64,000 bases of DNA from Macrostomum hystrix (Eukaryota > Animalia > Platyhelminthes), in contig CATNEN010000038.1 of assembly GCA_950097015.1 (NCBI GenBank), positions 22,382,001 through 22,446,000 of the forward strand, written 5' to 3'. This document shows positions 15,629-53,928 of the stretch, in pieces (within the stretch, counting starts at the first letter, position 1; every line of letters begins with the position of its first letter). Under the pieces are notes generated by a model. The model saw only the letters and a list, made by a program, of their open reading frames with translations, ran no database searches and had not been told where the DNA came from. Both the position numbers and the translations under genes were made by a program.

Positions 15629-17829
15629 ATGCTTCTACTGATCCTGGCCCTGCAAGTTTCCATGGCAACTGCAACCTGTGAGTTGCCAATTCGCAGGTAT
15701 CAAGTGCTCAACTCCTGGCAGTCGTCCTTTAAGACGATCCGCGGAATAACGCCTTGCTTCAACAACAGAAGCTCCGAATCAACAATTTTGGATGCTTTTG
15801 CCATCTACAGAGTCTTAGATACAATATATAAGAGATTCGTTATCCCCAGCTACGCGTTCTTCCACAGCAGAGACAGAAGCCAAGCAGACGGAGGATTTCA
15901 TTGGTTCGCAGTGCAGCTGAATGAGTTGGTGCTCATCAGATCAGTTACTGTAAAGGGCATAGAGGGTGAGTCACTGCTCAATTTTTTCTATACACATCAG
16001 CTTCCACTGCTTAGTCGTGAAGTTCTCACTTTTAGATCGCACTAAATATCTCTACCCGAGAGCCAGAGACATCGAGATCTGGACATCGAGCAGCGGCAGT
16101 CAACTGTTCTCAGGTGATCACTGCAGCTCAAAAAACATGAGCAGCCAGTTCAGAGAGTCTCAGCATCTCTGGAGACGGTGCGGCCTGACGGTGAGCAAGC
16201 AGGCGCGTATCGAGGCTGGTGAGATCTTCACCGTGAACTGCTTAGCGGAGGTGAGACCTGCTCTGTGCCTTGAGTTGTGCTCTGATGAGTTCTGGATCCC
16301 ACTGAGATTTCATCTCAACTCCAGGTGAGACACTTGCTGCTGCGAAGGAACATTACTGTGTCACCTAATTATGAGGCCTACATGAGCTTCGCAGATCTCA
16401 GGCTTCAGACTATGCATCTGAGTGAGTTCGGGTCTTTTACTATGGACCTATTGTTGTGAAAGGGAAATTCATAAATTTCCTTAAATTTTCTTTAGCAATG
16501 TCGATTGGATGGTTTGTAAATCTCCAGAATCCTCAGCGCCTCAGCTGGTGCCTCAGAGCTCAAAGTTCAGTGTGAGCTGCTTGCTGGACTGCAGCGATGG
16601 AGTAAAACTCAACTCGAGCTCAAGCGAGCTACAGCTGTGCACTCCCAACGGCAGCTGCATAAATGGCCATGAGCTGCACATTGGCAGCGCTCAGCCTGAG
16701 CACTCAGGTGACTACTGGTGCAGATTCGGATCGTTTGCAGAAACATCCACTGTCAGAGTGCTGAGTGAGTTCAATTTTAAAGTATTTCTCAAGCAGGAAG
16801 TGCACAAGTCAAGCTTAAAATTTCAATGGTAACTTATTTTCCAGCGGTTTCGGTAGATCAGGTCGTGGCCCTCAAGTCGAGGTTCTCTGTGGGCTGTGAG
16901 CTGCACTGCAACAGCTCAATGCTGTGCTCAAACTCAAGCGGGCTCCAGCTCTGCCTTCCGAACGGTACCTGCATTGCAGAACACGAGACTGCAGTGGCTG
17001 AAGCTCGGCCTGATCACTCTGGAAAGTACTCTTGCAGACTTGGCTCTGTCAGCAAGCAGACCTCAGTCACCGTGCTCTGTGAGCAGATTTTTTACTTTCT
17101 TTTAACGAATTATAAGGGCCTGAAAGCGGGACATTTAAAATTTAACACCTTAAAATTCCCACCAGACCCGCCATCGAGTCTATCGATAAAATTCCTGGAA
17201 AGCTGCAAAAGCATGGCAAGAATAACGGTACAGGTCAGATCATCGGCTTCTCACCCAATGCCTGAGCACACGTGCAACTTTCAAGCTGGCGAACTCAATG
17301 GAAAAAATGTCTCTCTGCTTGAACTTGTGAGTTGCATTCCGTATGATTCTTGAAAGACTTGGTCGCAACTCACTGTACTATATGAAACTGCAGGTGCCAG
17401 ACAACAGGGGCCTCCTTACCACGTGGTCGCTCGACAGCGGTGTTGAGCATGACATGAGCAGGAGCGAAGTCTTTGTCAACTGCAGTGCGGCACAGAACCT
17501 CCCTGAGAACATGACTTTCGGCTCACCTGTTTACACCACGGCTCGACTCGTCTGCCCTCGGGCTGGGCTCACGACTTTCACGATTGCTGTCTTAGCCACC
17601 ATCGTTTTCGTTGTTGTGTCAGTCGTCTGTGCTGCATGCTTTCTGCTCATCTCGAAGGTCAGTGCAGGAAAATGTGGCGATCGTGCACTTCAGCAGCTGA
17701 CGGCTCTGAACCTTTCCATTGCAGCTCCGAGTGCCGTCAACTGAGCCTTCAGCAGCCGGGCTCAACCTAAGCTCAGGCATTCAGGAGGAATCTAAAGTGT
17801 CACCTGAGGTGTCTCATCCTGCTAATTAG
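15629..17829 (+). CDS. Receptor gene A: SP - F-type lectin-like - Ig - Ig - Ig(C2-like) - TM - 36-aa tail, 549 aa; exons 15629-15965, 16036-16250, 16325-16421, 16528-16764, 16845-17078, 17166-17326, 17394-17657, 17725-17829
   Basis: Signal peptide MLLLILALQVSMATA. FTLD/discoidin-like pattern FFHS..HWFAVQL..V.IRSVTV..D..R..EIW..CG..G.IFTVNC..RHLLL..MSFADLRL. Ig F-strand motifs HSGDYWC and HSGKYSC, YPP linker, TM IAVLATIVFVVVSVVCAACFLLI. Seven short GT-AG introns; exon sum 1650 nt. Confidence 0.8.
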
Positions 17830-17917
17830 GTGAGTCAACGAGTCACTTAGACTTCAGCGAGCAAACAGGGACAGTCCTGTCCGAGAAATGCCACGTTGCT
17901 TATCCATTAATCTCGAT

Positions 17918-18082
17918 GGCTACTTGGCTACAGTGGCTACTTGGCTACAGTGGCTACATGGCTACAGTGGCTACTTGGCTACAGTGGCTACTTGGCTACA
18001 GTGGCTACTTGGCTACAGTGGCTACTTGGCTACAGTGGCTACTTGGCTACAGTGGCTACTTGGCTACAGTGGCTACTTGGCA
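17918..18082. repeat. 17-bp minisatellite (GGCTACTTGGCTACAGT) in the intron after the receptor stop codon; also 42201-42580 and 48540-48850 (inverted)
   Basis: Same position in all three paralogs; source of spurious LATVATWLQWLLGYSGY ORFs. Confidence 0.95.
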
Positions 18083-18189
18083 ATAATGCCACTATATCGG
18101 AAATGGGTCGGGTAATGGGGATCAGGACCCGGTAGCTGATGGATGTGTGGCAACCCTGCATGATGGGGATCAGGACCCGGTAGCTGATG

Positions 18190-18500: not shown

Positions 18501-19136
18501 CACTGGGGCCGTTACTCGTAGAAACACCCCTCGTAGAAACAACAAAACTTATGCATTCAATACGTAATTATTTATCATTGCGTTGCGTCTCTATTCTTTC
18601 TTCCAGTGCTCATGTGTTCTTACTATTTGCGTTATTTTCTTCACTCTGATGTACAGTGCCACCTGTAAGTTTGTTGTATTCAATTCCAGTTTTTTTGTCT
18701 TCAGTGTCAGTGTTTCATCGTATTCTCCTGTTCACCCTGTTCTTACCTGTTTCCAGCCTTTAAGAGGCAGTGCTTGTCACATAATAATAAATTTGTTCAG
18801 AGTGTTGCATTCTAGCATTGCTTATGTCTCTATACGCGGCACTGACGTACCAGTGACACATTTGTCTTAAGCCTTCTTCAAAAAATCTTTCTTGTTATTA
18901 GGCTACAGAGTTGACTTCAAATATAACTGCGTTATCCTCAAGCAAGGTAACCCAAGAATTTAGCATATTGCCTAAACGTGTACTCAATTTCGAGCCGTAC
19001 TCAATTTGAAATACGGCTCGTAGAAGACCGCGCGACTTGTGACGACGTATACCATTCTGTCAGTAGAAAAACACGACGATAACGCACGTAGTGACATCCG
19101 GGATCTCTCTTCTCTCTCTCAATCCAGTCTGCCTTG

Positions 19137-24024: not shown

Positions 24025-27000
24025 ATGCTTCTGCTGATCCTGGCACTGCAAGTTTCCATGGCAACTGCAGCCTGTGAGTTTCCGATTCGCAGGAGCCTAG
24101 TGCTCAGCTCCTGGCAGTCGTCCTTTGAGACGATCGGCGGAAGAACGTCTTGCTTCAGCAGCAGAAGCTCCGCCGAAGAGGAAAGGACGGTAAAGAATTC
24201 TGGCCTCTTTAGTTATCCCAGCTACGCGTTCTTCCACAGCAGAGACAGAAGCCAAGCAGACGGAGGATTTCATTGGTTCGCAGTGCAGCTGAATGAGCCA
24301 GTGCTCATCGGATCAGTTTCTGTGAAGGGCAGAGAGGGTGAGTCACTGGCCAATTTTTTCTATCCACATCAGCTTCCACTGCTTAGTCGTGAAGTTCTCA
24401 CTTTTAGATGGCGCTACATTTGTCTACCCGAGAGCCAGAGACATCGAGATCTGGACATCGAGCAGCAGCAGTCAACTGTTCTCAGGTGATCACTGCAGCT
24501 CAAAAAACATGAGCAGCCAGTTCAGAGAGTCTCAGCAGCTCTGGAGACGGTGCGGCCTGACGGTGAGCAAGCAGGCGCGTATCGAGGCTGGTGAGATCTT
24601 CACCGTGAACTGCTTAGCGGAGGTGAGACCTGCTCTGTGCCTTGAGTTGTGCTCTGATGAGTTCTGGATCCCACTGAGATTTCATCTGAACTCCAGGTGA
24701 GGTACTTGCTGCTGCGAAGGAACATTACTGTGTTATCTTATCCTGACGACTTCATGAGCTTCGCAGATCTCAGGCTTGAGATTGTGTATCTGTGTGAGTT
24801 CGGGTCTTTTACTATGGACTTATTGTTGTGAAAGGAAAATTCTAAAATTTCCTTGATTTAGCAATGTCGATTGATAATTTGTAAATCTCCAGTAACCTTA
24901 GCGCCTCAGCTGGTGCCTCAGAACTCAGAGTTCAGTGTGAGCTGCATGATGGACTGCGATGGAGTACTTGACTCGAGCTCAAGCGAGCTGCAGCTGTGCT
25001 CTCCCAACGGCAGCTGCATAAATGGCCATGAGCTGCACATTGGCAGTGCTCAGCCTGAGCACTCCGGTGACTACAGGTGCAGATTCGGATCGGTTGCAGA
25101 TACATCCACTGTCAGTGTGCTGAGTGAGTTCACTTTTAAAGTAATTTTTCAAGCAGGAAGTGCACAATTTTAGCAGATTTTCTACTTTGTTTATCACTTT
25201 TAGAGAATAATAAGGGCCTGAAAGCGGGACATTTTTGCGCTTCAAATCGTAGCTCGGACAAATTACACAAACGGTAAAAAATAGCAAAATGCAGAAGTTA
25301 GCTTGGGGAAATTGGTTAAAGTATAAAGGCTGAAAGCAAATTTAAACACAATAAGGAATAATAGAGCATTGCTCGAGTTATTTTCCGAATTGCTTGGAAG
25401 GAGTGTCGCGAAATTGAGAGAAGTAATATTTTTTTAGCTGGCCTGCGGGTAGCCAATGGAGAGAAGAGAAGCGAAAGTGACCGGGCGCTGTGTTGGTTAA
25501 GTATATAGTATCCAATGAAAGAGGGTCCTAAATGAAATTCAGCAACGCTAAGCGCAACACCAACGGATGCAGTAATCAAAAGTTATGACTGATCCCGTTT
25601 TGCATGTTTTAGCCCCACGGGGGGTCAAAATTTGGGATTTCCGCATCCACCTTCGGGGCAAGTGGATGCTTAGAAAATTCAAAATATACATTTTGAATGA
25701 CCAAAATCACGTTTTTGGGATTTAATTACCCACATCTTCGGTAAACAATATCCAATCAGTCTGAAACCAACATTCTAGTATAGGCGACACCCAGAGGCGT
25801 CCAAAGTGCACCCTGTACTAAAAGTACTTTAAAAGTGCACATTTTTTTCAATCATAAAAGTGCAAAGTCAAAAAATCTCTTCACTATCAAGTAGGCCAAT
25901 GTGTTGGGGTTACGACCCAGCAAGTCAAAGTTTAAAAACATGCACATTTTTCAACCTCAAAAACCCGTTTTTGACCCTATGACCCAGAAGATGAGTCAGC
26001 AAGAAAAAATCCATATCAAATCATTGTAGGCTTCTATAGCCCGCATCGACTGGATAGAGTCACTTGGTGACACCATAAAATGCCGAAAAAAGCGCCGAGA
26101 GACCAATTTTTGTCATGTCGAAAAAAATCTTATTTTTGGTTGCCATGGCAACGCTTTTCACTTCAGTACATAGACCCAAGTATTTTACATGTTTTGCAAA
26201 AAACCGCATCCAAATCAGTTCAACTGGGCAAAAGCGGCAATCTTTAAAAGTTGAAAAGCCTGCTTTCGTATCCCGACACGTTGGTTACATCTTATCAAGA
26301 TGAGATATCGCATCCGTAATGAGCAAGAGAATGCCTCGCTAACGCTCGGCTTCCTCTTGGCCATTACTGGCTCACTCATCCCAACTGGATAGAATTAGAG
26401 CGAAGTCAGAACTGACTGAAGAATCCAAGGTAAGCAGACAGCAAAACAGACAGGACAGGGTAGCAAACACCCAAAGCCAATTGAAACGCCAATAGCCAAT
26501 TCAACGATCATGCTGATTAATGGAATTCATGAAATCGTTGAGAAATTAGCTCCTCATCAACGAAAATCGATACTAGTATCCTATCCTGCCTTTACCTCGT
26601 CACAGAGACTTCAGTCACAGAAAATGGATTCGATCGCTATTTGTTTATCTGTTTATCATACAAGCTGGGCAAAACGTTTTTTCAGCGGCATCCGCGGATC
26701 AGGTTGTGCCCATCAACTCGAGTTTCGCTGTGAGCTGCGAGATTCACTGCAACAGCTCAATGCTGTGCTCAAACTCAAGCGGTCTCCAGCTCTGCCTTCC
26801 GAACGGTACCTGCATTGCAGATCACAAGATTGCAGTGGCTCGAGCACTTCTTGAGCACTCTGGAAAGTACTCTTGCAGACTTGGCTCTGTCCGCAAGCAG
26901 ACCTCAGTCGCCGTACTCTGTGAGCAGATTTTCTTTTTTTGTATAACTTTTAAAGAAAAATAAGGGCCTGATAGCGAGAAAACTTTGCGGTTCAAATCGT

Positions 27001-30000
27001 GCCTTGGACAAATTAGACAAACAGTAAAAAATAGCACAATTCAAAATTGAGCCTGGGGAAATTAGTTAAAGTATAAAGGCCGAAAGCCAATTTAAACACA
27101 ATAAGGAATAATAGAGAATTGCTCGAGTTATTTTCTGAATTGCAATTTTCCATGGCAACTGCAGCCTGTGAGTTTCCGATTCGCAGGAGCCTAGTGCTCA
27201 ACTCCTGGCAGTCGTCCTTTGAGACGATCGGCGGAAGAACGTCTTGCTTCAGCAGCAGAAGCTCCGCCGAAGAGGAAAGGACGGTAAAGAATTCTGGCCT
27301 CTTTAGTTATCCCAGCTACGCGTTCTTCCACAGCAGAGACAGAAGCCAAGCAGACGGAGGATTTCATTGGTTCGCAGTGCAGTTGAATGAGCCAGTGCTC
27401 ATCGGATCAGTTTCTGTGAAGGGCAGAGCGGGTGAGTCACTGCTCAATTTTTTCTATGCACATCAGCTTCCACTGCTTAGTCGTGAAGTTCTCACTTTTA
27501 GATGGCGCTACATATCTCTACTCGAGAGCCAGAGACATCGAGATCTGGACATCGAGCAGCAGCAGTCAACTGTTCTCAGGTGATCACTGCAGCTCAAGAA
27601 ACATGAGCAGCCAGTTCAGAGAGTCTCAGCAGCTCTGGAGACGGTGCGGCCTGACGGTGAGCAAGCAGGCGCGTATCGAGGCTGGTGAGATCTTCACCGT
27701 GAACTGCTTAGCGGAGGTGAGACCTGCTCTGTGCCTTGAGTTGTGCTCTGATGAGTTCTGGATCCCACTGAGATTTCATCTGAACTCCAGGTGAGGTACT
27801 TGCTGCTGCGAAGGAACATTACTGTGTTATCTTATCCTGACGACTTCATGAGCTTCGCAGATCTCAGGCTTGAGATTGTGTATCTGTGTGAGTTCGGGTC
27901 TTTTACTATGGACTTATTGTTGTGAAAGGAAAATTCTAAAATTTCCTTGATTTAGCAATGTCGATTGATAATTTGTAAATCTCCAGTAACCTTAGCGCCT
28001 CAGCTGGTGCCTCAGAACTCAGAGTTCAGTGTGAGCTGCATGATGGACTGCGATGGAGTACTTGACTCGAGCTCAAGCGAGCTACAGCTGTGCTCTCCCA
28101 ACGGCAGCTGCATAAATGGCCGTGAGCTGCACATTGGCAGTGCTCAGCCTGAGCACTCCGGTGACTACAGGTGCAGATTTGGATCGGTTGCAGATACATC
28201 CACTGTCAGAGTGTTGAGTGAGTTCACTTTTAAAGTAATTTCTCAAGCAGGAAGTGCACAAGTTGAGCAGATTTTCTACTTTGTTTATCACTTTTAGAGA
28301 ATAATAAGGGCCTGAAAGCGGGACATTTTTGCGCTTCAAATCGTAGCTCGGACAAATTACACAAACGGTAAAAAATAGCAAAATGCAGAAGTTAGCTTGG
28401 GGAAATTGGTTAAAGTATAAAGGCTGAAAGCAAATTTAAACACAAGAAGGAATAATAGAGCATTGCTCGAGTTGTTTTCCGAATTGCTTGGAAGGAGTGT
28501 CGAGAAATTAAGAGAAGTAATATTTTTTAGCTGGCCTGCGGGTAGCCAATGGAGAGAAGAGAAGCGAAAGCGACAGGGCGCTGTGCCTTTGGCTATACAC
28601 GACTCGTATTGGTTAAGTTGGACACACTGGATGGGGTTGGCGTGGCGTTAACAAGAGAGTGCGCGACTGAGGGTAAGAGAGGAGGCTAGAAAGTGGGAGG
28701 CGGACCAATCAGAAGGCGGAAAATGTAGAGAACTAGGCTAGTAATGAAGTCGGTGACTTATTACGGGATGAGTGAGCCGTGATTCATATCAAAGTACTGA
28801 TAAATACTTATTAAAGACTCTGACTGACCCCTGCCCTTCCGTTCTCTCTCCCAGACCCGCCATAAATCTCTTGGCGTTCAGTGATTTCTCAAACTTTCAA
28901 TAAAGAGAGGGGGCGCAGTGTCTTTAATCATTTGTCCAACTTTCTTCATTAAAGTATGACGAAATTAACGGCAGACAGAGGCAGGCGGAAGTTTAATATT
29001 CCAATTAGAGTCCAGAGTTCGCGTAATCTAGTGTAGCGATGGCACTTTATCTTTATTTATTTTCACTAAGACACACGACAAGCAATATAATTAAAGTTGG
29101 GTGCAGGAGCTCAATGATGACGACGCAATAGAGAAGACAGCGGATGACAGTAGAGAGGAAATGGCAGAACGAAACACTCGGCAGAACAGTGGGTAAGTAG
29201 GTCGCAGTGAAAGTAACAGTGGCCGGGACAAGAGCAGTGACAAAAGGGGTGGGCCAATGTCCAAAAGCGTGTCGCTTTTTTGATTTGGCCTCTGCGTTAT
29301 CCGCAAAACTATCGAACAAAACTGTTCATGAGAGACAGAAAGAGAAGCTTTTGTTCCGGCGTAGACATAGTAGTAAACTTTTAAACTTTCAGTTTGCGAG
29401 ACTAGAGCCTTAGCTGTATATGTATATGTACTTACCAGCTCCTTCTCCATGCAGCTGCAAAGCGAATGTCTATGGCACGAATTCTATGCTAGGGAGAATA
29501 GCAGTACTGATATTTACTACACCATTTTACCCTCAATTTTGAACAACGAAAACTTCAATAGTGACAAACTCCGATTCAAATTCGACAGTTAACGGCAAGG
29601 CACGTCAAAGCTACATTCGATTTTGACACAGTCAACTTCAAGTTGGAAAAGGTCCGATTTAGCCCATGCGCGAGCCAAATCCTCACTCCTCAAGTTGTCT
29701 AAAACTCTGATTCAATTTTGACACACCGAACGACAAAAGTTACACTCTATGGTAAATTCTCCTGAATATCCGCTTCAATTTTATCAACTCCACTTCAATA
29801 TAGACAGTCTACGTCCAATTTCGACGGACTGGTGACTGCTGACGTTGTCAATCACAATGCTGCATCGCCGGTCCGGGTGCACTTGCTGGAAGTTGGCGAT
29901 TGTGATGCTTACAAATTCGCCAAATCGCTCCTTTGTCATGCCCTTCTCGTAGCTGTGATAGTGCACGACACCAAGAGTCGGGCTGACAGCCAAGCAAACC

Positions 30001-33000
30001 GTCACGCGCTGCCCCTTCGGCCCAGAAACCACTCAGAAAGGCGTTGGCCTTTCTGGGACCGGCCAATTGAGCGGCGCATCCAGGTGTTGAATCCGAACTC
30101 ATCAATAAAGATCTCCATATCCAGGGTCTCCTCAGAGCACAGCCACTCTGCAAACTGGCGTCGGGTCTCAATCGTAGCAACCGAGTTTCTCTCAGCGGGT
30201 ATGTCGCGCGAACCAGATTGGTTGTATACAGAGCACCGTCAAGCTTGATGCTATGGTCTTGTCCGAGACGTGCCGCTTGCTTGGGTATCTGTTGCGCAAC
30301 ATGCCGTTCATCTGCGACAGCGTTAGCAGTGGGTTGTGCTGGACGATTGCGCACAGAAAGCGTTGCATTTCGTTGTCCCACTTTGAATGCTTCGCACCTC
30401 CCTTTGCTTTTTTCTCAGCTCTGCCGGTCCGAACAATGGCATAAGCAGTGGTCCTCTTTATCCCCAGTTGGATCGCAAGGTGTACGAAGTCCTCACCGTT
30501 CTCATGAGCTGTAATTAGGCGCTGTCGGTCCTGAACAGAAACTGACTGGTTTCTTCTTTGTTCCGGCTGCTGCAGCTCCTCGTCAATCGGATCGTCGGTT
30601 GACTCCGAACCTTCTTCTTCCAGAAACGATTCCGCGTCCTCGTCGATCATTTAAATTTTCTAAGTTATGAAGTATAAAAATAAGGACGGAACGGAAGCGA
30701 CACGGAGAAGAGAAGGCTCTCATCTAACTTTTACCCTGGACAAGACCATTTCGTTTATGGCAAAAGCTCCCGATGGTTCATGTACTGTATAGTCATGAAA
30801 AGTCCGTCAAGATTGGACGTAGACTGTCTATATTGAAGTGGAGTTGATAAAATTGAAGCGGATATTCAGGAGAATTTACCATAGAGTGTAACTTTTGTCG
30901 TTCGGTGTGTCAAAATTGAATCAGAGTTTTAGACAACTTAAGGAGTGAGGATTTGGCTCGCGCATTGGCTAAATCGGACCTTTTCAAAATTGAAGTTGAC
31001 TGGGTCAAAATCGAATGTAGCTTTGACGTGCCTTGCCGTTAACTGTCGAATTTGAATCGGAGTTTGTCACTATTGAAGTTTTCGTTGTTCAAAATTGAGG
31101 GTAAAATGGTGTAGCAGATATTTACCAGTTCCTTCATGAAACCAGATTTTAGCAGACTGATGAATATCCGCGGTTATTTTAGCTGCTGCTAACTGCTAAT
31201 TTACCAATTGCTCATGAAATCGGTCCCAGGAGAGAGTTTTGTCACGGGACAAAAGCAGTGGCAACCATCGGAGTCCTTGAGGTCGAAGCATCTGCAGCAC
31301 CTACAGCAGAGCGGCTGATCAGAGCACTGCAGCTCATTTGCTTCTTCACTGACACTCCAACATAGCGCTCAAGAGCAGAGCTCGAATGGCCTGGGACGCG
31401 GCAAATTTCAGCCCGTTGAAGCCCAGCCTCGTCGAGCAGCGTAGCTGTAGTCTTACGCAGACTCTGATTTTTCTCATGGTTTCCTCTGGAGCCAACTCTT
31501 TAATCAGCGATTGAACTAAAACACTCAGCGTGTGCTTTCCGATGGGTGTCCGGGTGTACCAGTCGGATAGAGCGTCTGGTTTCCAATGTCGATTGTGCCC
31601 CAGGAAAAGCGCATCATTGCACTCGCGTGGTCTGCGACTCACGTAAGCAAACGATGCAACGCTCATGCCCTGCTGTGTGGAATGCCCGTACCACCTTTGG
31701 AAGCCGACGCAGGCCTGTAAGTCCTCCCTGATTCATCTTGGTTACCGCATTTTCGTTGTACGTTAGGCATTCGTTCTCACCAACGTTATCGAGCTTGATC
31801 TGCTGGCCATAGCGCAAGTTGCGAAGCTCAGTACCCCCGCAGGGCAAAGTGTTTTCCAATGGACCAGATCACCGCGTTCAGTAGTTGCCCTGGATTCGTG
31901 TTGCCAAGCAGATTACTTGTCCAGAGCTTGTCCTCCAGACAAGAAGGAATTGGTTCTGAGCGGTTTAGTCCAGCACCCTATCCTTCCTTTGTGCTAATCT
32001 TCATAGACGCATCGAGTGCACGACGACTCTCAGCAAAAGCCGGATCTTTCCAGAGACTCCAGTCTCGTTTGCAGACGTTGACCATATGGTACTGCACCAT
32101 AGAATAGAAGTCCTTTAACGTCGAGGCGGAGTATCTCTGTTTCTTTTTCGTTCGTACTTTCATTACAAAGAACTTTAACAGAAATTTCAGATCCGATTTG
32201 CTCATCTCATGCAGCTTCTTGAGCACCATCAGTCCAGATTGCTCGCCAGACGCCCACTGTGTCTTCTTTTCGTTGTGCCATTCCATAAACGTGTTGACCA
32301 TCCAAGTAGCTTTCTTCTTAGTTGCTTCTGGCACACAGCCATCGACAACAGCCATGAGCTCTTCCTCCGACGTAAAATCGAAGCGAGGGCTTGAGGGTGT
32401 GTCCGATGTGGTTCCGTCCGCAAAAATCAAATCAATCATTTTCGCTATATAGTCATCAATACTGGCTAATTCACTAATGTCTTCAGCTATTTCGTGCGCA
32501 AGCGTTGAATTTAAATCGGTTACACTTAACCATTTAGCAGAAGTTTCGCTCAACGTGCATTATTTGTGTGCATAAAAAATCACGTTTTATAAATGAAAAT
32601 CAATACTGTACATCTGAAATGTGATGCACAGCTTCAAGTGACATGTCATTGTCTTGGAAACATCTAGACGCATCTATTGAAACCATTTTAAATGACATTG
32701 GGGCAAAGAACAACATTTTATTAGAGTAAACTCGAAAATGCAGCTTCTCTTAAAAGTACTGCATCGTGTACTGACGCTCAATCAATGTTCACAGGCAGGC
32801 ATGCATGCAGTCCTTTTGAAGAGGGTTCTAAATGATTTTTAACGACACCAAACTTGATTCGAGAAATTGCACTACTAAAATCTTATGAGTAATCTTATGG
32901 AAATTGGCATAGGCCCCAGGTGTCAAAATTGCTGCAATGTGCCTTCCATTTCGAAAAATCGAATTTTCCAACACAAATGCAGCTGCTTATCGGATGCAGC

Positions 33001-39000: not shown

Positions 39001-42000
39001 CGTGGTGTCGATTGCGCTGAAAGAGTGACACTTGTGACACAATGACCACAGCACAAAACATCAACTGACACAATGACCACAGCACCAAACCTCAACTGAC
39101 ACAATGACCACTGCACAAAACCTCGACTGACACAATGCGCATAGGATAAAACCTCGACTTAACAATAACCACAGCACAAAACCTCAACTGACACAATGCC
39201 CACAGCATAAAACCTCGACTGACACAATGACCACAGCACAAAACCTCAACTGACACAATGACCACAGCAAAAAACCTCAACTGACACAATGACCACAGCA
39301 AAAAACCTCAACTGACACAATGCCCACAGCATAAAACCTCAACTGACACAATGACCACAGCATAAAACCTCAACTGACACAATGACCACAGCATAAAACC
39401 TCAACTGACACAATGCCCACAGCATAAAACCTCAACTGACACAATGCCCACAGCACAAAACCTCAACTGACATAATGACCACTGCACAAAACCTCAACTG
39501 ACACAATGACCACAGCGTTAAACCTCAACTGACACAATGACCACAGCATAAAACCTCAACTGACAATGACCACAGCACAAAACCACAACTGACACAATTG
39601 CCACAGCACAAAACCTCAACTGACACAATGACCACAGCACAAAACCTCAACTGACAATGACCACAGCACAAAACCACAACTGACACAATTGCCACAGCAC
39701 AAAACCTTAACCGATACAATGTCCACGGGCATGCTGGCAAAAAGCCAAGTCAATTGAAACGCCAATAGCCAATTTGAACATCAACTATGAGTCTCGGAGC
39801 TCATGAACTCGTTGATAAACTCGCTCTACATCAACGATAATAGATGCTAGATTCCAATGCCTTTGAGTGCATCCGTACCATTAATTCGTCACAGAGACTT
39901 CAGTCACATAAAATGCATTCGATCGCAATTTGTTTATCTGTTTATCATACAAGCTGGTCAAATTATTTTTTCAGCGGCCTCCGCGGATCAGTTTGTGGCC
40001 GTAAACTCGAGTTTCGCTGTGAGATGCGAGCTACACTGCAACAGCTCAATGCTGTGCTCAAACTCAAGCGGGCTCCAGCTCTGCCTTCCGAACGGTACCT
40101 GCATTGCAGAACACAAGACTGCAGTGGCTCAAGCTCTGCCTGATCACTCTGGAAAGTACTCTTGCAGAATTGGCTCTGTCAGCAAGCAGACCTCAGTCGC
40201 CATGCTCTGTGAGCAGATTTTCTACTTTGTTTATAACTTTTAACGAATCATAAGGGCCTGAGAGCGAGACATTTTTGCGCTTCAAATTGTCGCTTCATAT
40301 CGTAGCTCGGACAAATCGCTTGAAATCGTCGCTTGGACCTATTAGTGAAACAATGAAAACCATAAAGCAGAAACTGGTCAGGGGAAATTCATCCAATGAC
40401 GAAGGCCGAAAGCTGAATGCAAACACAATAATGAATTATAGAGAAATAATCATATTCAATGGTACAAGCAAATGTGTCAATGTGTAGAAACACTAAAACA
40501 AAAAACGACTTGTTAGTGAACTACAATGCAACTTGAAATAGGTCAAAAGTATATTACGCTGCTGTAATCTTGATTTTGGAAACAGACGAGCATTGTGCAG
40601 AAGCTCCCAAAAACCTCGGCAGAGAATTGCAGCCCAGCAAGAGAAGCTTTCTCCGTTGCTCTCAACAATGGCACCATGGATGCAGAGCAGCTTATTTAGA
40701 AGAACTGCACCTGCGATTGCATTGGAGCACTGCTTACGATTCTCCTCAATCCGCGAAACAGGGACACCAAGAGGGTTCTTCGTGATGTCGATTGCGCTGA
40801 AAGAGTGATACTTGTGACACAATGACAACAGCACCAAACCTCAACTGATATAATGACCACAGCACCAAACCTCAACTGGCACAATGCCCACAGCACAAAA
40901 CCTCAACTGACACAATGACCACAGCACAAAACCTCCCTTGACACAATGACCACATCTGTCCACATCACATCCACGTCGACGATAATAGATACTAGATTCC
41001 AATGCCTTTGAGTGCATCCATACCATTTACTCGTCACAGAGCCTTCAGTCACATAAAGTGCATTCGATCGCTATTTGTTTATCTGTTTATCATACAAGCT
41101 GGTCAAAATATTGTTTTCAGCGGCCTCCGCGGATCAGTTTGTGGCCGTAAACTCGAGTTTCGCTGTGAGCTGCGAGCTACACTGCAACAGCTCAATGCTG
41201 TGCTCAAACTCAAGCGGACTCCAGCTCTGCATTCCGAAGGGTACCTGCATTGAAGATCACAAAATTGCAGTGGCTCGAGCACTTCCTGAGCTTTCTGGAA
41301 AGTACTCTTGCAGACTTGGCTCTGTCAGCAAGCAGACCTCAGTCAACGTGCTGTGTGAGTGAGCATCCAGAATTTTTCTAATATTTGCTCCTCATAACAA
41401 ATACTTCAGCAGCAATTTATGAAAGCACCTCAATATTCCCGCCAGACCCGCCATCGAGTCTATCGATAAAATTCCTGGAAAGCTGCAAAAGCATGGCAAG
41501 AATAACGGTACAGTTCAGATCATCGGCTTCTCACCCAATGCCTGAGCACACGTGCAACTTTCAAATTGGCGAACTCAATGGAGAAAATGTCTCTCTGCTT
41601 TCACAGGTGAGTTGCATTCCGTATGATTCTTGAAAGACTAGGTCGCAACACACTGTACTATATGAAACTGCAGGTGCCAGACAACAGGGGCCTCCTTACC
41701 ACGTGGTCGCTCGACAGCGGTGTTGAGCATGACATGAGCAGGAGCGAAGTCTTTGTCAACTGCAGTGCGGCACAGAACCTCCCTGAGAACATGACTTTCG
41801 GCTCACCTGTTTACACCACGGCTCGACTCGACTGCCCTCGGGCTGGGCTCACGACTTTCACGATTGCTGTCTCAGCCACCATCGTTTTGGTTGTTGTGTC
41901 AGGCGTCTGTGCTGCATGCTTTCTGCTCATCTCGAAGGTCAGTGCAGGAAAATGATGGCGATCGTGCACTTCAGCAGCTGACGGCTCTGAATCTTTCCAT

Positions 42001-42110
42001 TGCAGCTCCGAGTGCCGTCAACTGAGCCTTCAGCAGCCGGGCTCAACCTAAGCTCAGGCATTCAGGAGGAATCGAAAGTGTCACCTGATGTGTCTCATCC
42101 TGCTAATTAG
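24025..42110 (+). CDS. Receptor gene B (model): SP-(FTLD-Ig-Ig)x3-Ig-Ig-Ig(C2-like)-TM-tail, up to 1391 aa; exons 24025-24337, 24408-24622, 24697-24793, 24893-25123, 26686-26919, 27165-27431, 27502-27716, 27791-27887, 27987-28217, 34525-34758, 35004-35270, 35341-35555, 35630-35726, 35826-36056, 36138-36371, 39975-40208, 41121-41354, 41446-41606, 41674-41937, 42006-42110
   Basis: There is only one full signal peptide (24025) and one TM exon (41674) in 18 kb. Every exon is open and phase-compatible (sum 4176 nt). The model depends on cryptic acceptors ACTGCAG ending at 27164 and 35003. Confidence 0.6.
25507..26389 (-). mobile_element. Truncated copy (5' ~0.9 kb) of the Helitron/Helentron-like element at 28733-34228
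   Basis: Near-identical to 33346-34228, including GGCTCACTCATCCC at 26369-26382. Confidence 0.6.
29520..31111 (-). mobile_element. Tc1/IS630-like DNA transposon with ~300-bp TIRs, TA target duplication and a defective transposase (30650 to ~29820)
   Basis: TIRs 29520-29819 and 30812-31111 (CACCATTTTACCCTC...); TA at 29518-19 and 31112-13; HTH LGIKRTTAYAIV..KGGAK, IFIDEFGF, IVIDNVSSH; frameshifts; no final E motif. Confidence 0.9.
31320..32553 (-). mobile_element. Crypton-type tyrosine recombinase (DUF3504), disrupted
   Basis: VPEATKKKATW..F.EW, FFVMKVRTKKKQRYSASTL, HFALRG(G)TELRNL, KMNQGGL, WYTRTPIGKHTL, NQSLRKTTAT, GHSS..LERY; stop at 31978 and several frameshifts. Confidence 0.85.
33346..36100 (+). 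repeat. Tandem segmental duplicate of 25507-28260 (offset 7839 bp)
   Basis: Exon boundaries shift by exactly 7839; few substitutions. Confidence 0.9.
36625..38940. other. Unclassified ~2.3-kb insertion in a gene B intron, probably decayed retroelement sequence
   Basis: Replaces ~220 bp present in the paralogous introns (40495-40720; 50715-50945); no intact ORF. Confidence 0.45.
39030..39720. repeat. 31-bp minisatellite (AATGACCACAGCACAAAACCTCAACTGACAC); also 40815-40950 and 50110-50620 (inverted)
   Basis: Tandem arrays of different length in paralogous introns before Ig exons. Confidence 0.95.
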
Positions 42111-43328
42111 GTGAGTCAACGAGTCACTTAGACTTCAGCGAGCAAACAGGGACAGTCCTGTCCGAGAAATGCCACGTTGCTTATCCTCGATTAATCTCGA
42201 TGGCTACTTGGCTACAATGGCTACTCGGCTACAATGGCTACTTGGCTACAGTGGCTACTTGACTACAATGGCTACTTGGCTACAATGGCTACTTGGCTAC
42301 AGTGGCTAATTGGCTACAATGGCTACTTGGCTACAATGGCTACTTGGCTACAGTGGCTACTTGGCTACAATGGCTACTTGGCTACAATGGCTACTTGGCT
42401 ACAGTGGCTAATTGGCTACAGTGGCTACTTGGCTACAGTGGCTACTTGGCTACAGTGGCTACTCGGCTACAATGGCTACTTGGCTACAGTGGCTACTTGG
42501 CTACAATGGCTACTTAGCTACAATGGCTACTTGGCTACAATGGCTACTTGGCTACAATGGCTACTTGGCTACAATGCTACTTGTCAGTAGTGTTTCCGTT
42601 TTATTTCCGAAACTGAATGAGTGCTCAAGGCTGCTCTGATTTCAGAAAACTAACGGCTTCGAGTCCGAGTGCTGCTACTTGATTGTTAGCATACCAGCGA
42701 CTGCTGCTGCTGGTGCAATAAATAATAAAAGAAACTTTTCGTTCATTAGTTTTTGCTCTCACTAGTGGCTGATCAATTATCCATGCAGAATATGTTCAAG
42801 AATCAAATATGTCTATCTGGTTGTCACCTCAGCCAATTTATTACAGTAGCTGGGCAGACAGTCCCAAAAATGTTCTTATCATATCATAGCTCGTAGAAGC
42901 CCAGTTTCCTTAGACGATTCTGTCTGAAATTTCTCTGCTTTTTGCACCCAGACTGACTGTTATTCAAGCATGCGAAAATGCGTCATAAACTGTTCTAATT
43001 ACTGTTCTCAAGTATTGCTTAATAAATATATTAAAATACACTCTAACCAGAAGCATGAGTTCAATGGGTCACTCCTCATCAAATGCAGAAATTTAAAACG
43101 GAATCTACAAAACTCTAAAAAACTCTACAAAACTCTACTGACTGTAGTGGAAATAAGATTTTTTGTGCAGTTTTCCCTATTCAAATTTATTCAAAGCACT
43201 CACCCTACTCAACTGTACCAAGCAAAAATGTGAGCAAAACTTACTTAACAGCACCTACTGATTATCAATAGCAACTGTAGTGCGCCGCGCATATGCCGTT
43301 GTTTACTATATTATCTCGTATCACTGAA

Positions 43329-48273: not shown

Positions 48274-48471
48274 TCAAAAATCACTCAAAAATGTGCAGTT
48301 GTGATGAATCTCTGGCTGATCACGAAAAAGATCGCCCAGAGCAACAATCTCAATGTAGTCAGTGCAGCAGTCGCTGTCTGTGTCCTGCCCCTCAACAGCA
48401 GCACGAGCAGCAGCAGTCGCTGGTATGCTAACAATCAAGTAGCAGCACTCGGACTCGAAGCCGTTAGTTTT
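48274..48471 (-). CDS. Putative extra cytoplasmic exon of gene C (65 aa) with YLIV and ITSM-like TDYIEI; gene B equivalent is 42646-42765 (+)
   Basis: TGATTTCAG acceptor, then an open phase-0 frame KTNGFESECCYLIVSIP...DCCTDYIEIVALG...SDF*. Confidence 0.5.
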   Translation of the reverse strand, partial: KTNGFESECCYLIVSIPATAAARAAVEGQDTDSDCCTDYIEIVALGDLFRDQPEIHHNCTFLSDF

Positions 48472-48935
48472 CTGAAATCAGAGCAGCCTTGAGCACTCAT
48501 TCAGTTTCGGAAATGAAACGGAAACACTACTGACAAGTAGCATTGTTGCCAAGTAGCCACTGTAGCCAAGTAGCCATTGTAGCCGAGTAGCCATTGTAGC
48601 CAAATAGCCATTGTAGCCAAGTAGCCATTGTAGCCAAGTAGCCATTGTAGCTAAGTGGCCATTGTAACCAAGTGGCCATTGTAGCCAAGTAGCCAGTGTA
48701 GCCAAGTAGCCATTGTAGCCGAGTAGCCATTGTAGCCAAATAGCCATTGTAGCCAAGTAGCCATTGTAGCTAAGTAGCCATTGTAACCAAGTGGCCATTG
48801 TAGCCAAGTAGCCACTGTAGCCAAGTAGCCATTGTATCCAAGTAGCCATCGAGATTAATGGATAAGCAACGTGGCATTTCTCGGACAGGACTGTCCCTGT
48901 TTGCTCGCTGAAGTCTAAGTGACTCGTTGACTCAC

Positions 48936-51900
48936 CTAATTAGCAGGATGAGACACCTCAGGTGACACTTTCGATTCCTCCTGAATGCCTGAGCTTAGGT
49001 TGAGCCCGGCTGCTGAAGGCTCAGTTGACGGCACTCGGAGCTGCAATGGAAAGGTTCAGAGCCGTCAGCTGCTGAAGGGCACGATCGCCACATTTTCCTG
49101 CACTGACCTTCGAGATGAAGCAGAAAGCATGCAGCGCAGACGACTGACACAACAACCAAAACGAAAATGGCTAAGACAGCAATCGTTTTCGTTGTTGTTG
49201 TCGTGAAAGTCGTGAGCTCAGCCCGAGGGCAGACGAGTCGAGCCGTGCTGTAATCAGGTGAGCCGAAAGTCATGTTCTCAGGGAGGTTCTGTGCCGCACT
49301 GCAGTTGACAAAGACTTCGCTCCTGCTCATGTCATGCTCAACACCGCTTTCGAGCGACCACGTGGTAAGGAGGCCCCTGTTGTCTGGCACCTGCAATTTC
49401 ATATAGTACAGTGTGTTGAAACCAAGTCTTTCAAGAATCATACGGAATGCAACTCACATGTGAAAGGAGAGAGACATTTTCTCCTTTGAGTTCGCCAGCT
49501 TGAAAGTTGCACGTGTGCTCAGGCATTGGGTGAGAAGCCGATGATCTGAACTGTACCGTTATTCTTGCCATGCTTTTGCAGCTTTCCAGGAATTTTATCG
49601 ATAGACTCGATGGCGGGTCTGGCAGGAATATTGAGGTGCTTTCAAAAATTGCTGCTGAAGTATTTGTTATGAGGAGCAAATATTAGAAAAATTCTGGATG
49701 CTCACTCACACAGCACGTTGACTGAGGTCTGCGTCTGCACAGAACCCAGGCTGCAAGAGTAATTTCCTGAGTGCTCAGGAAGTGCTCGAGCCACTGCAAT
49801 TTTGTGATCCTCAATGCAGGTACCCTTCGGAATGCAGAGCTGGAGTCCGCTTGAGTTTGAGCACATCATTGAGCTGTTGCAGTGCAGCTCGCATCTCACA
49901 GCGAAACTCGAGTTTACGGCCACAAACTGATCCGCGGAGGCCGCTGAAAACAATATTTTGACCAGCTTGTATGATAAACAGATAAACAAATAGCGATCGA
50001 ATGCACTTTATGTGACTGAAGTCTCTGTGACGAGTAAATGGTATGGATGCACTCAAAGGCATTGGAATCTAGTGTCTATTATCGTCGATGTGGATGTGAT
50101 GTGGACAGATGTGGTCATTGTGTCAGTTGAGGTTTTGTGCTGTGGTCATTGTGTCAGTTGAGGTTTAGTGCTGTGGTCATTGTATCAGTTGAGGTTTTGT
50201 GCTGTGGTCATTGTATCAGTTGAGGTTTTGTGCTGTGGGCATTGTGTCAGTTGAGGTTTTGTGCTGTGGTCATTGTATCAGTTGAGGTTTTGTGCTGTGG
50301 TCATTGTGTCAGTTGAGGTTTGGTGCTGTGGTCATTGTGTAAGTTGAGGTTTAGTGCTGTGGTCATTGTATCAGTTGAGGTTTTGTGCTGTGGGCATTGT
50401 GTCAGTTGAGGTTTAGTGCTGTGGTCAATGTGTCAGTTGAGGTTTTGTGTTGTGGTCATTGTGTCAGTTGACGTTAGGTGCTGTGGGCATTGTGTCAGTT
50501 GAGGTTTAGTGCTGTGGTCAATGTGTCAGTTGAGGTTTTGTGTTGTGGTCATTGTGTCAGTTGACGTTAGGTGCTGTGGGCATTGTGTCAGTTGAGGTTT
50601 GGTACTGTGGTCATTGTGTCACAAGTGTCACTCTTTCAGCGCAATCGACATCACGAAGCACCCTCTTGGTGTCCCTGTTTCGCGGATTGAGGAGAATCGT
50701 AAGCAGTGCTCCAATACAATCGCAGGTGCAGTTCTTCTAAATAAGCTGCTCTGCATCCATGGTGCCATTGTTGAGAGCAACGGAGAAAGCTTCTCTTGCT
50801 GGGCTGCAATTCTCTGCCGAGGTTTTTGGGAGCTTCTGCACAATGCTCGTCTGTTTCCAAAATCAAGATTACAGCAGTGTAATATACTTTTGACCTATTT
50901 AAAGTTGCATTGTAGTTCACTAACAAGTCGTTTTTTGTTTTAGTGTTTCTACACCATTGACACATTTGCTTGTACCATTGAATATGAAAATTTCTCTATA
51001 ATTCATTATTGTGTTTGCATTCAGCTTTCGGCCTTCGTCATTGGATGAATTTCCCCTGACCAGTTTCTGCTTTATGGTTTTCATTGTTTCACTAATAGGT
51101 CCAAGCGACAATTTGAAGCGCAAAAATGTCTCGCTTTCAGTCCCTAATTATTCTTTAAAAGTTATAAACAAAGTAGAAAATCTGCTCACAGAGCATGGCG
51201 ACTGAGGTCTGCTTGCTGACAGAGCCAAGTCTGCAAGAGTAATTTCCAGAGTGATCAGGCAGAGCTCGAGCCACTGCAGTCTTGTGTTCTGCTAAGCAGG
51301 TACCGTTCGGAAGGCAGAGCTGGAGACCGCTTGAGTTTGAGCACAGCATTGAGCTGTTGCAGTGCAGCTCGCAGCTCACAGCGAAACTCGAGTTGACGGC
51401 CACAAACTGATCCGCGGAGGCCGCTGAAAAAATATTTTGACCAGCTTGTATGATAAACAGATAAACAAATAGCGATCGAATCCATTTTATGTGTCTGAAG
51501 TCTCTGTGACGAGGTAAAGGCAGGATGGGAATCAAGTATCGATTTTCGTTGATGAGGAGCTAATTTCTCAACGATTTCATGAATTCCATTAATCAGAATG
51601 ATCGTTGAATTGGCTATTGGCGTTTTAATTACTCGTAACTTTAGGTTTTTGCTACTTTGTCCTGTCTGTTTTGCTGTCTGCTTACCTTGGATTCTTTAGT
51701 CAGTTCTGACTTCGCTCTAATTCTATCTTATTCTCTACATTTTCAGCCTTCTGATTGGTCCGCCTCCCACTTTCTAGCCTCCTCTCTTACCCTCAGTCGC
51801 GCACTCTCTTGTTATCGCCACGCCAACCCCCTTGTCGGAAATGCTTCCTCCAGAACTCCTTCTCGTCGTTTCCTTCGACTCTCCTCTTTTCTCTCTTGCT

Positions 51901-53928
51901 CACCAACTAGTTAATCAGTACGTTTCACTGCACTTTAATTGTTTCGCTTTCTATCGTCCTTTTAGCCCATAGACTACGCATCCTGCCCGCCCCTTGTTAC
52001 TCAATCGTTGTCTATGTTTCTAATTCCTTTCTCGGTACAGTTCCCCTTTAGTTGCTTCTAGTGCGCACTAAGCCCACAAGAGCTTCGAACCAAATACTTT
52101 CAATATACAAGTCAAATACAAGCAAAGAAGTTTTGTCCCAAGCGACACCCCTCCAGTCTGTCCAACTTAACCATGCGCATATTCGAGTCGTGTATAGCCA
52201 AGGGCACAGCGCCCTGCCACTTTCGCTTCTCTTCTCTTCATTAGCTACCCGCAGGCCAGCTTAAAAAATTATTGCTTCTCTTAATCTCTTGACACTCCTT
52301 CCAAGCCATTCGGAAAATAACTGGAGCGATTTTCAATTATTCCATTTTGTGTTTTAATTGGCTTTCGGCTTTTCTAATTTAACTAATTTCCCCAGGCTAA
52401 CTTCTGCATTGTGCTATTTTTGACCGTTTGTCTAATTTGTCCGAGCTACGAATTGAAGGGTAAAAATGTCCCGCTTTCAGGCCCTTATAATTCTTTAAAA
52501 GAAAGTAGTAAATCTGCTCACAGAGCACGGCGACTGAGGTCTGCTTGCTGACAGAGCCAAGTCTGCAAGAGTACTTTCCAGAGTGCTCAAGAAGTGCTCG
52601 AGCCACTGCAGTCTTGTGATCTGCAATGCAGGTACCGTTCGGAAGGCAGAGCTGGAGACCGCTTGAGTTTGAGCACAGCATTGAGCTGTTGCAGTGCATC
52701 TCGCAGCTCACAGAGAACCTCGACTTGAGGGCCACCACCTGATCTACCGAGGTCGCTGGAAAATAAGTTACCATTGAAATTTCAAGCTCAACTTGTGCAC
52801 TTCCTGCTTGAAAAATTACTTTAAAAGTGAACTCACTCAGCACACTGACAGTGGATGTTTTTGCAACCGATCCAAATATGCACCTGTAGTCACCGGAGTG
52901 CTCAGGCTGAGCACTGCCAATGTGCAGCTCATGGCCATTTATGCAGCTGCCGTTGGGAGAGCACAGCTGCAGCTCGCTTGAGCTCGAGTTGAGTTTTACT
53001 CCATCGCAGTGTAGCAAGCAGCTCACACTGAACTCTGAGCTCTGAGGCACCAGCTGAGGCGCTGAGGATTCTGGAGATTTGCAAATTATCAATCGACATT
53101 GCTAAATCAAGGAAATTTTAGAATTTCCCTTCCACAACAATAGGTCCATAGTGAAAGACCCGAACTCACTCAGATACACAATCTGAATCCTGAGATCTGC
53201 GAAGCTCATGAAGTCGTCAGGATAAGATAACACAGTAATGTTCCTTCGCAGCAGCAAGTACCTCACCTGGAGTTCAGATGAAATCTCAGTGGGATCCAGA
53301 ACTCATCAGAGCACAACTCAAGGCACAGAGCAGGTCTCACCTCCGCTAAGCAGTTCACGGTGAAGATCTCACCAGCCTCGATACGCGCCTGCTTGCTCAC
53401 CGTCAGGCCGCACCGTCTCCAGAGCTGCTGAGACTCTCTGAACTGGCTGTTCATGTTTCTTGAGCTGCAGTGATCACCTGAGAACAGTTGACTGCCGCTA
53501 CTCGATGTCCAGATCTCGATGTCTCTGGCTCTCGGGTAGACATGTGTAGCGCCATCTAAAAGTGAGAACTTCACGACTAAGCAGTGGAAGCTGATTGCAT
53601 GGAAAAAATTGAGCAGTGACTCACCCGCTCTGCCCTTCACAGTAACTGCTCTGATGAGCACTGACCAATACAGCTGCACTGCGAACCAATGAAATCCTCC
53701 GTCTGCTTGGCTTCTGTCTTTGCTGTGGAAGAACGCATAGCTGGGGGTATCATTCCTTTCAATCCTTCTCTCTTCGATGTAGGTTCTGATGCTGAAGCAA
53801 GACCGTACATCGCGGATTGTCTCAAAGAACGACGACTGCCAGGACTTAAAGACATTGTACCTGCGAATCGGCATTTCACAGGCTGCAGTTGCCATGGAAA
53901 ATTGCAGTGCCAGGATCAGTAGAAGCAT
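48936..53928 (-). CDS. Receptor gene C: SP-FTLD-Ig x4-Ig(C2-like)-TM; exons 53625-53928, 53341-53555, 53170-53266, 52837-53070, 52522-52755, 51190-51423, 49710-49943, 49458-49618, 49108-49390, 48936-49040; a +1 insertion after the TM gives a stop at 49021
   Basis: Exon sizes match genes A/B (215, 97, 234, 161). The TM exon is 283 nt versus 264 nt (18-nt Thr-rich insert plus 1 nt). Confidence 0.78.

Follow-up and report, generated by a model that had tools for sequence, protein, structure and literature searches.

A candidate family of membrane proteins with a jelly-roll head on an immunoglobulin stalk in a duplicated gene cluster of Macrostomum hystrix

We analysed a stretch of 64,000 nucleotides from the flatworm Macrostomum hystrix (assembly GCA_950097015.1, contig CATNEN010000038.1, positions 22,382,001 to 22,446,000 of the forward strand), hereafter called the window. 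Self-BLAST of the window reveals dense blocks of 85-99% identity between 15.4k and 54.4k, where three loci lie that appear to encode membrane proteins with an N-terminal head and a stalk of immunoglobulin (Ig) domains: gene A and locus B in tandem on the forward strand, and gene C inverted. We consider it reasonably probable that the cluster arose by recent duplication and belongs to a multigene family that occurs in macrostomids only and whose products are type I membrane glycoproteins with a jelly-roll head on an Ig stalk. This view rests on the structure and splicing of the genes, on the two folds, on the size and narrow taxonomic range of the family, and on a variability that is concentrated in the loops of the head.

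Gene structure and transcripts

The exons of gene A were mapped from open reading frames (ORFs) together with splice joints in public contigs. They encode the head, the stalk, an Ig-like membrane-proximal domain (MP), a transmembrane (TM) helix and a tail:

15629..17829 (+): gene A, 8 coding exons, 549 aa, based on open frames, GT/AG borders and spliced contigs
15629-15965, 16036-16250, 16325-16421 (+): signal peptide and head exons
16528-16764, 16845-17078 (+): two Ig exons, phase 1-1
17166-17326, 17394-17657 (+): MP and TM exons
17725-17829 (+): tail exon, 34 aa, with a TAG stop that abuts a GT donor

The coding total of 1650 nt equals 549 codons and a stop, the head takes up about 190 aa, and the TM helix has no charged residue. 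Mapped back to the window, the gene A exons find 38 copies; all are open, and apart from the 5' ends of first exons all have retained AG/GT borders. Window introns are short (66-106 nt, GT/AG). An earlier, sequence-only reading had proposed three paralogous genes here, each with a signal peptide, a lectin-like head, a TM segment and 3, 9 or 5 Ig-like modules. Its paralogous exon sets are confirmed as blocks of 85-99% identity, far beyond chance, and so is the arrangement in tandem (A, B) and inverted (C) copies. Its 549-aa protein of gene A is reproduced exactly (550 codons with the stop), and its module counts hold once MP is included as an Ig-like module, in agreement with the fold. Its three heads have to be replaced by five, at ~15.6k, 24.0k, 27.1k and 35.0k (+) and at 53.9k (-), and its gene B, read as one head with nine Ig modules and a TM segment, holds three head units of which the second and third lack a signal peptide.

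Transcript evidence comes from contigs of four public runs in two studies, for which the library type is not on record; since the contigs carry spliced GT..AG joints, the runs should derive from RNA. The joint 16248/16323 is present in contigs of all four runs, and GT..AG joints also occur at 16421/16528, 17078/17166 and 17655/17723, while 15964/16035 and 16764/16845 are each found within single contigs. Direct joints cover six of the seven gene A introns; the remaining one (exon 6/7, 17326/17394) is seen as a loose end only, and another loose end leads from 17829 into a further exon. Zero-mismatch contigs cover 15675-15868 and some spliced contigs are 99-100% identical to gene A. In one contig a loose end connects an Ig-exon donor with another Ig exon of that type, so that stalk length differs among transcripts. 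Spliced transcripts, which the sequence-only reading had presupposed, thus exist in public contigs, and it is well supported that this gene family is transcribed and spliced.

Locus B consists of three units (B1 to B3):

24025..26919 (+): unit 1; exon 1 with signal peptide 24025-24337, head exons 24408-24622 and 24697-24793, Ig exons 24893-25123 and 26686-26919
27087..34758 (+): unit 2; head without signal peptide, with an exon to 27431 (start 27087 or 27117), 27502-27716 and 27791-27887
27987-28217, 34525-34758 (+): unit 2 Ig exons, flanking a transposon-rich block at ~28.3-33.3k
34958..42110 (+): unit 3; head without signal peptide, 34958-35270, 35341-35555 and 35630-35726
35826-36056, 36138-36371, 39975-40208, 41121-41354 (+): unit 3 Ig exons
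41446-41606, 41674-41937 (+): unit 3 MP and TM exons
42006-42110 (+): unit 3 tail exon, ending in TAG

The order is therefore head-Ig-Ig, head-Ig-(5-kb transposon block)-Ig and head-Ig-Ig-Ig-Ig-MP-TM. Inside the block lies a transposon with inverted ends at 29510-29830 / 30801-31121, and helix-turn-helix and QRICH1-like ORFs are present. Self-BLAST aligns 25506-28267 with 33345-36106 at 99.4% identity, which points to a very recent duplication or, with lower probability, to an assembly problem. The signal peptide MLLLILALQ is found only on the first head (24025), and MP, the TM helix and the tail only on the last unit. The second and third heads begin with ...NLNTIRNNRELLELFSELQFSMATAACEF, and upstream of them (26920-27170 and 34759-35009) the frame is open and reads NLNTIRNNRELLELFSELQ. 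Homology of the unit 2 head starts at 27141; AG acceptors in phase 1 place the exon start at 27087 or 27117 and match the phase-1 donor of the preceding Ig exon. Three more loci on the same contig (L006, L010 and L013) have this internal type of 5' end, again with an Ig exon some 200-250 nt ahead of it. With three heads, one signal peptide and one TM helix, locus B may thus be one three-headed gene or contain truncated duplicates. It is compatible with a single gene of ~1,440 codons in the order head-Ig-Ig-head-Ig-Ig-head-Ig-Ig-Ig-Ig-MP-TM, which would hold the block at 28.3-33.3k in one long intron; alternatively, units 1 and 2 may be the truncated duplicates.

The inverted gene C and the exons that follow the stops of locus B and gene C are:

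53928-53625, 53555-53341, 53266-53170 (-): head exons of gene C, which spans 48936..53928
53070-52837, 52755-52522, 51423-51190, 49943-49710 (-): four Ig exons
49618-49458, 49390-49108 (-): MP and TM exons
49040-48936 (-): tail exon
42646..42762 (+): exon after the locus B stop, 3' untranslated region as spliced, from contig joints and translation; the continuing frame reads KTNGFESECCYLIV... and diverges at the inverted-duplication edge, 42716
48334..48471 (-): tail exon after the gene C stop, open in the continuing frame (FESECCYLIV...DTDSDCCTDYIEIVA), with a YxxV motif and a TxYxxI motif, the latter resembling the immunoreceptor tyrosine-based switch motif (ITSM)

The last coding exon of A, B3 and C ends in AAT TAG followed by GTGAGT (17827-17835, 42108-42116 and 48930-48938 (-)). 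The TM exon of gene C measures 283 nt versus 264 nt in A and B3, with an extra TTTTTK stretch and one base. Because this exon is 19 nt longer, the gene C tail is read out of frame (...LLHLEAPSAVN-stop) and ends after ~13 residues. An ITSM or an immunoreceptor tyrosine-based inhibitory motif (ITIM) is absent from the reading frame of the window genes, as A, B3 and C end in ...SHPAN-TAG and have no tyrosine in the tail. In public contigs, transcripts splice from the end of exon 8 onward into a further exon. The motifs of the exon after the gene C stop, ECCYLIV and TDYIEIV, belong to a sequence that is homologous to the in-frame tail of protein P0001 of M. lignano (ECSYLSV...DCTVYLEIVA, with TxYxxI). 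The 11 of 12 sampled loci in which TAG stands ahead of the tail exon all lie on contigs C38 or C39. Locus L050 on contig C8 has GAG in place of TAG and a natural stop after YIEIVAVGD, and a contig from a different organism reads AAT GAG ACA ACC AGC GGC TTC GAG at the stop position. Gene A has lost the post-stop tail exon, and the inverted-duplication edge runs through that of B3. An in-phase alternative donor (GAG/GTGTCT) lies 18 nt upstream of the stop, and its use is seen in no contig. The post-stop exon has a pN/pS of 0.61, a value that would fit continued translation as well as its loss. Judged from these comparisons, the window copies are in all probability tail-less derivatives of a receptor with tyrosine motifs.

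The expected site of the gene A tail exon, directly downstream of the gene, is occupied by one copy of a 1-kb duplication (11805-12803 / 18549-19547, 98.6% identical) that includes part of a gene resembling a multi-pass membrane protein (ORFs 19137-20347 (-)); Pfam gives no match for this gene. A tandem repeat follows exon 8 in genes A, B and C (17888-18115, 42234-42640 and 48478-48849; as protein, a 17-aa unit, ATMATWLQWLLGYNGYL). Tandem arrays of ~31-bp units lie within long introns of locus B (39035-39726) and gene C (50110-50621).

Folds of the head and the stalk

Sequence profiles alone do not place the head. Pfam searches with the window head ORFs gave no match at E<=1, PF22633 and PF00754 included, and a family profile found no match among Protein Data Bank (PDB) sequences even at E 10. 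For M. lignano P0001 there was a sub-threshold match to F5_F8_type_C (E 0.008) and a further sub-threshold match (E 0.055). The head of the family has the signature WQSS ... FFHS ... ADGGFHWFAVQL ... VKGRE ... YxRAxDIEIW ... GDHC ... WxxCG ... YLLLRR.

We modelled the fold on the head-only homologue P0006, aligned with M. lignano proteins and with exon pieces of the window and of 20 other loci. The AlphaFold2 (AF2) model reached a mean predicted local distance difference test score (pLDDT) of 76.9 and a predicted template modelling score (pTM) of 0.77. Every significant Foldseek match is galactose-binding-domain-like: the F-type lectin domain (FTLD) of lectinolysin (E 2e-4), CBM32, EndoS, striped bass F-lectin, the muskelin discoidin domain and APC10. 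VIA-align gives a tie at the top among a CBM32 module (4zxe, Z 9.7), eel agglutinin (1k12, Z 9.7, 19% identity, 121 aligned) and bass F-lectin (3cqo, Z 9.5, 22% identity). All 50 rows that it lists have the same fold, neuropilin b1b2, the CASPR2 discoidin domain and muskelin included. MAM-type and ephrin-receptor-type heads were rejected, as neither is among the top 50 fold matches. By language-model features, the closest ESM Atlas clusters are F5_F8_type_C and fucolectin (0.94-0.96). On these models, the assignment of the head to the galactose-binding-domain-like jelly-roll fold (discoidin / F-type lectin / CBM32 clan) holds.

The sequence-only reading had named the head an F-type lectin. Its fold is indeed of the FTLD/discoidin type, but Pfam and PDB-sequence matches are missing, and hhalign of the family against the canonical FTLDs of the same genome gives a probability of 1.3% with only the WW/strand block aligned. 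The assignment to F-type lectins holds at the level of fold only, because CBM32 modules score the same. With the F-type lectins (eel AAA, 1K12, and striped bass MsaFBP32, 3CQO, of the PF22633/PF00754 clan) the head shares the jelly roll (Z 9.5-9.7, 120-121 aligned) and a similar order of conserved blocks: QSS, H[ST], aromatic-W, a strand, a basic loop, C and the final strands. It differs in that both the match at the level of Pfam and hidden Markov models and the motifs for fucose and calcium are missing, and CBM32 fits the fold equally well. The CBM32 modules, tied as best match (4zxe, Z 9.7; many others at Z 8-9.3), differ in turn as appendages of bacterial glycosidases, with 6-16% identity and no Ig or TM context.

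Canonical FTLDs bind fucose through H-X24-R-X-D-X4-(R/K) and calcium through hhDGx (PMC5712786). The strict fucose motif also failed on our canonical controls, because the spacing in this genome is 26-33, so it was relaxed to 20-34 residues. It was then found in none of 17 family sequences versus 12 of 15 ORFs with canonical FTLDs in this genome, and the calcium motif in none of the 17 versus 13 of the 15. In sequence position, a His (FFHS) and two Arg (KGRE and YxRA) that are conserved in the family run roughly parallel to the FTLD triad. Since both motifs are absent, sugar binding is unproven and glycan recognition is inferred. Sugar binding by the head is plausible, and the head is best placed in the discoidin/F-lectin/CBM32 fold class, as a new and divergent member.

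The genome also contains an expansion of the PF22633 type, with at least 143 exon matches on other contigs (C1, C3, C2, C7 and C39; e.g. L031-L040) and none at loci of the head-Ig family. Many of these canonical domains stand in tandem arrays of ~140-180-aa ORFs, and most have kept the motifs for fucose and calcium; their sequences are unrelated to those of the window-type heads.

The stalk exons all measure 231-237 nt in phase 1-1 and encode one domain each, with VSC ... (E/D)HSG(D/K)YxC (a DxGxYxC-type motif), extra cysteines and several N-glycosylation sequons. No Pfam Ig model scored above its cut-off; the best was Ig_2 (E 1.9e-5, 25.2 bits versus a cut-off of 27), and single exons reached E 0.01-0.05. 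For the structure, M. lignano P0020 (Ig, MP and TM) was folded with the window Ig and MP exons in the alignment; MP was modelled on a thin alignment because MP/TM exon rows misplaced by MAFFT were dropped. The AF2 model is all beta, with a pLDDT of ~86-94 for the Ig domain and 60-82 for MP, and the 50 best Foldseek matches consist entirely of tandem-Ig proteins or Fab chains over ~200 columns (IgLON5, BTN3A, RAGE VC1, MAdCAM-1 D1D2 and MDGA1). The models thus predict that the stalk exons encode Ig domains and that MP is Ig-like. Among the M. lignano members, some have a single Ig domain and some none, and in some the head passes directly into the TM helix; stalk length varies by whole exons.

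Family range, variability and neighbouring elements

A six-frame search of the 220-Mb, 42-contig assembly gave 98 exon matches, with at least ~54 distinct heads on four contigs; this is the genome-wide copy count that the sequence-only reading had called for. The C38 subfamily (80-95% identity) comprises the window copies and another copy just beyond the window end. Arrays on C8 have 43-66% identity and those on C5 33-45%, and one copy lies on C39. Against 1.84 billion representative proteins, phmmer found only 16 matches at E<=0.001. Of the six that were looked up, five come from M. lignano and are annotated as uncharacterised, as 'Ig-like domain-containing' or under other automatic domain names; the sixth is from a metagenome contig of 1.6 kb. 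The M. lignano relatives are ~50% identical to the window proteins, and a homologue search with P0002, in a collection without the window's own proteins, returned three M. lignano proteins only. At the level of sequence similarity, restriction of the family to macrostomid flatworms is well supported. We found no description of it in the literature on Macrostomum lectins and Ig proteins, on the architecture FTLD, Ig and TM, or under the M. lignano accessions, so the view that the family is undescribed stands.

Pairwise ratios of non-synonymous to synonymous substitution (dN/dS, Nei-Gojobori) among A, B1, B3 and C range from 0.5 to 1.3, based on small counts, with replacements clearly over-represented in exons 2, 3 and 6 (e.g. 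13 non-synonymous to 1 synonymous for exon 3 of A versus the others). The most variable part of the head is a short patch:

15774..15839 (+): most variable head patch, in exon 1, unalignable between paralogues and variable in length; a gap in the A/B self-BLAST, and a segment that contigs replace

Among the copies in the genome, column entropy peaks at head residues 21-50, which include this patch, with 1.95 bits at residues 31-40. Smaller peaks occur at residues 81-90 and 151-160, and the strand cores are nearly invariant (0.2-0.7 bits). This pattern fits diversifying loops on a fixed scaffold, and relaxed constraint on the loops gives the same picture. The locus had been called rapidly evolving; the dN/dS of ~0.5-1.3 and the loop-centred variability are compatible with this, but relaxed constraint fits equally well.

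Around the family the window contains:

~1-11k: TH1/NELF-C/D gene
56680..57453 (-): single-exon gene, 257 aa, with signal peptide and C-type lectin domain (Pfam Lectin_C, E 3.9e-6, 28.0 bits versus a cut-off of 22.6)

The latter is the C-type lectin gene that had been noted near the cluster, and it lies outside the head-Ig receptor family. Segment 38941-42716 is an inverted copy of 50715-48401 (86-96% identity by self-BLAST). Between the 3' halves of locus B and gene C, which are inverted relative to each other, lies the spacer 42716-48181 with a membrane-protein-like ORF (43948-44484 (-), by eye MATE-transporter-like) and an ORF of 345 aa (46549-47586 (-)); Pfam gives no match for either. Block 42716-43104 is repeated at 47793-48181 and 58234-58622 with 98% identity. 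Tc1-like and QRICH1/Crypton-like ORFs also occur within the window. ORF translations judged by eye suggest a non-LTR (long terminal repeat) retrotransposon at 60699-63964 (-), with endonuclease-, reverse-transcriptase- and RNase H-like ORFs and a GC content of 0.51-0.55.

Proposed function and alternative explanations

From outside to inside, the protein would consist of the jelly-roll head of ~190 aa, a variable number of small cysteine-rich Ig domains, the Ig-like MP, one TM helix and a short cytoplasmic tail. The head would be held off the cell surface and bind an external ligand, most likely a glycan and possibly a protein. Stalk length would have changed through gain and loss of Ig exons, and the family would diversify via tandem and inverted segmental duplication. 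The ancestral tail probably bore the tyrosine motifs YxxV and TxYxxI, which TAG as last codon of the preceding exon would remove in the three window genes and in the C38 subfamily generally. With the motifs removed, the window copies would still bind but not signal through this tail, and they would act as adhesion, decoy or partner-dependent receptors.

Known systems resemble this architecture in part. The review of F-type lectins lists CCP, C-type lectin, pentraxin, FA58C and TM among the partners of FTLDs, and Ig is not among them (PMC5712786). In the type I membrane protein furrowed / CG9095 of Drosophila, too, an F-type-like head is borne by repeated small modules outside the cell and a TM helix follows, and its FTLD likewise deviates from the basic triad (PMC5712786). 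Its stalk differs in that it consists of CCP (sushi) repeats and a C-type lectin domain instead of Ig, and phmmer found no sequence relationship. Snail FREPs, CREPs and GREPs share the concept of a diversified invertebrate multigene family that combines the Ig superfamily with a lectin-type domain (fibrinogen, C-type lectin or galectin, respectively). They are secreted, with Ig N-terminal and the lectin domain C-terminal, whereas the present family has its lectin-like domain N-terminal, a TM helix and another lectin fold; no homology was detected. Hydractinia Alr and vertebrate KIR/SLAM-type receptors are, like this family, clustered type I receptors with Ig stalks and rapid duplication. Their distal domain is an Ig V-type domain, in contrast to the jelly-roll head, and no sequence homology was found. 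As in ITIM/ITSM receptors, an in-frame TxYxxI/V tail is present in some members (M. lignano P0001 and L050), while others are tail-less; unlike paired receptors, the tail-less window copies have no charged TM residue to recruit an adaptor.

Several observations weigh against the view of a functional receptor cluster with a glycan-binding head. Without both FTLD motifs, sugar binding by the head may be lost or changed. The structure models were built for homologues that are ~50% identical (P0006 and P0020) and not for the window's own spliced proteins, and the RNA origin of the runs, whose library type is unrecorded, is inferred from the spliced joints. A cluster in partial decay could also account for a dN/dS near 1, the lack of a signal peptide on internal heads, the transposon block of locus B, the gene C frameshift and the stop ahead of the tail exon.

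It is possible, if somewhat unlikely, that the head is a protein-binding module and not a lectin, and that the family mediates cell-cell or cell-matrix adhesion instead of recognising non-self glycans, for which the discoidin domains of DDR and neuropilin are precedents with the same fold. The missing fucose and calcium motifs, the fold matches to neuropilin b1b2, CASPR2 and muskelin and the short, tyrosine-free tails of the window copies would suit such a role. However, most of the top structural neighbours are carbohydrate-binding modules or lectins, the highest identities among the top fold matches are to F-type lectins (19-22%), and the conserved His/Arg/Arg appear roughly parallel to the FTLD triad. 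We think it unlikely that much of the cluster is non-functional debris of segmental duplication, with B units 1 and 2 truncated, tails cut off and relaxed constraint that only looks like rapid evolution. Such decay would explain the B2 and B3 heads without signal peptide, the 5-kb transposon block, TAG before the tail exon in 11 of 12 sampled copies, the 19-nt frameshifting insertion in gene C exon 7, the lost tail exon of gene A and the dN/dS of 0.5-1.3. Yet none of the 38 window exon copies has lost its open frame or its splice sites, locus B starts with a single signal peptide and ends with a single TM helix, phase-1 acceptors keep the frame before the internal heads, the 5' sequence of the internal heads recurs at three other loci, and gene A is matched exactly by spliced transcripts.

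A role in immunity, allorecognition or gamete recognition is speculative and has no direct support. In the window copies a stop precedes the family's only signalling-type motif. Reproductive genes are typically genus-restricted, fast-evolving, tandemly duplicated surface proteins, which would favour recognition of sperm, egg or mating partner in this hermaphrodite over an immune role. In oysters, fertilisation uses polymorphic sperm proteins with F-lectin repeats, and F-type lectins are involved in fertilisation (PMC5712786). The tyrosine-motif tails of other family members, however, resemble immune-type receptors more than sperm ligands, and we find a reproductive role quite doubtful. We also give only a small chance to a full recognition repertoire, in which loops like the complementarity-determining regions (CDRs) of antibodies would vary on a lectin fold, heads would stand singly or in chains of up to three on variable Ig stalks, ITSM-like members would signal and tail-less ones would be paired or act as decoys. 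Such a repertoire would discriminate self from non-self, microbes or mating partners, and would be an independent analogue of FREP-, Alr- or KIR-type systems in Platyhelminthes.

To our knowledge, no variable surface-receptor family has been described in free-living flatworms. If the family consists mostly of relaxed duplicates, it would merely be a lineage-specific gene expansion. If the loops of the head bind ligands, it would add another invertebrate lineage to those that have built a diversified set of receptors, here from two old modules (the discoidin/F-lectin-type jelly roll and Ig) in an arrangement that we found in no paper or review on the subject. The contrast between tail-bearing and tail-less members and the possible three-headed gene provide concrete hypotheses, and with homologues present in M. 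lignano, where transgenesis is established (PMC5730564), the family is testable.

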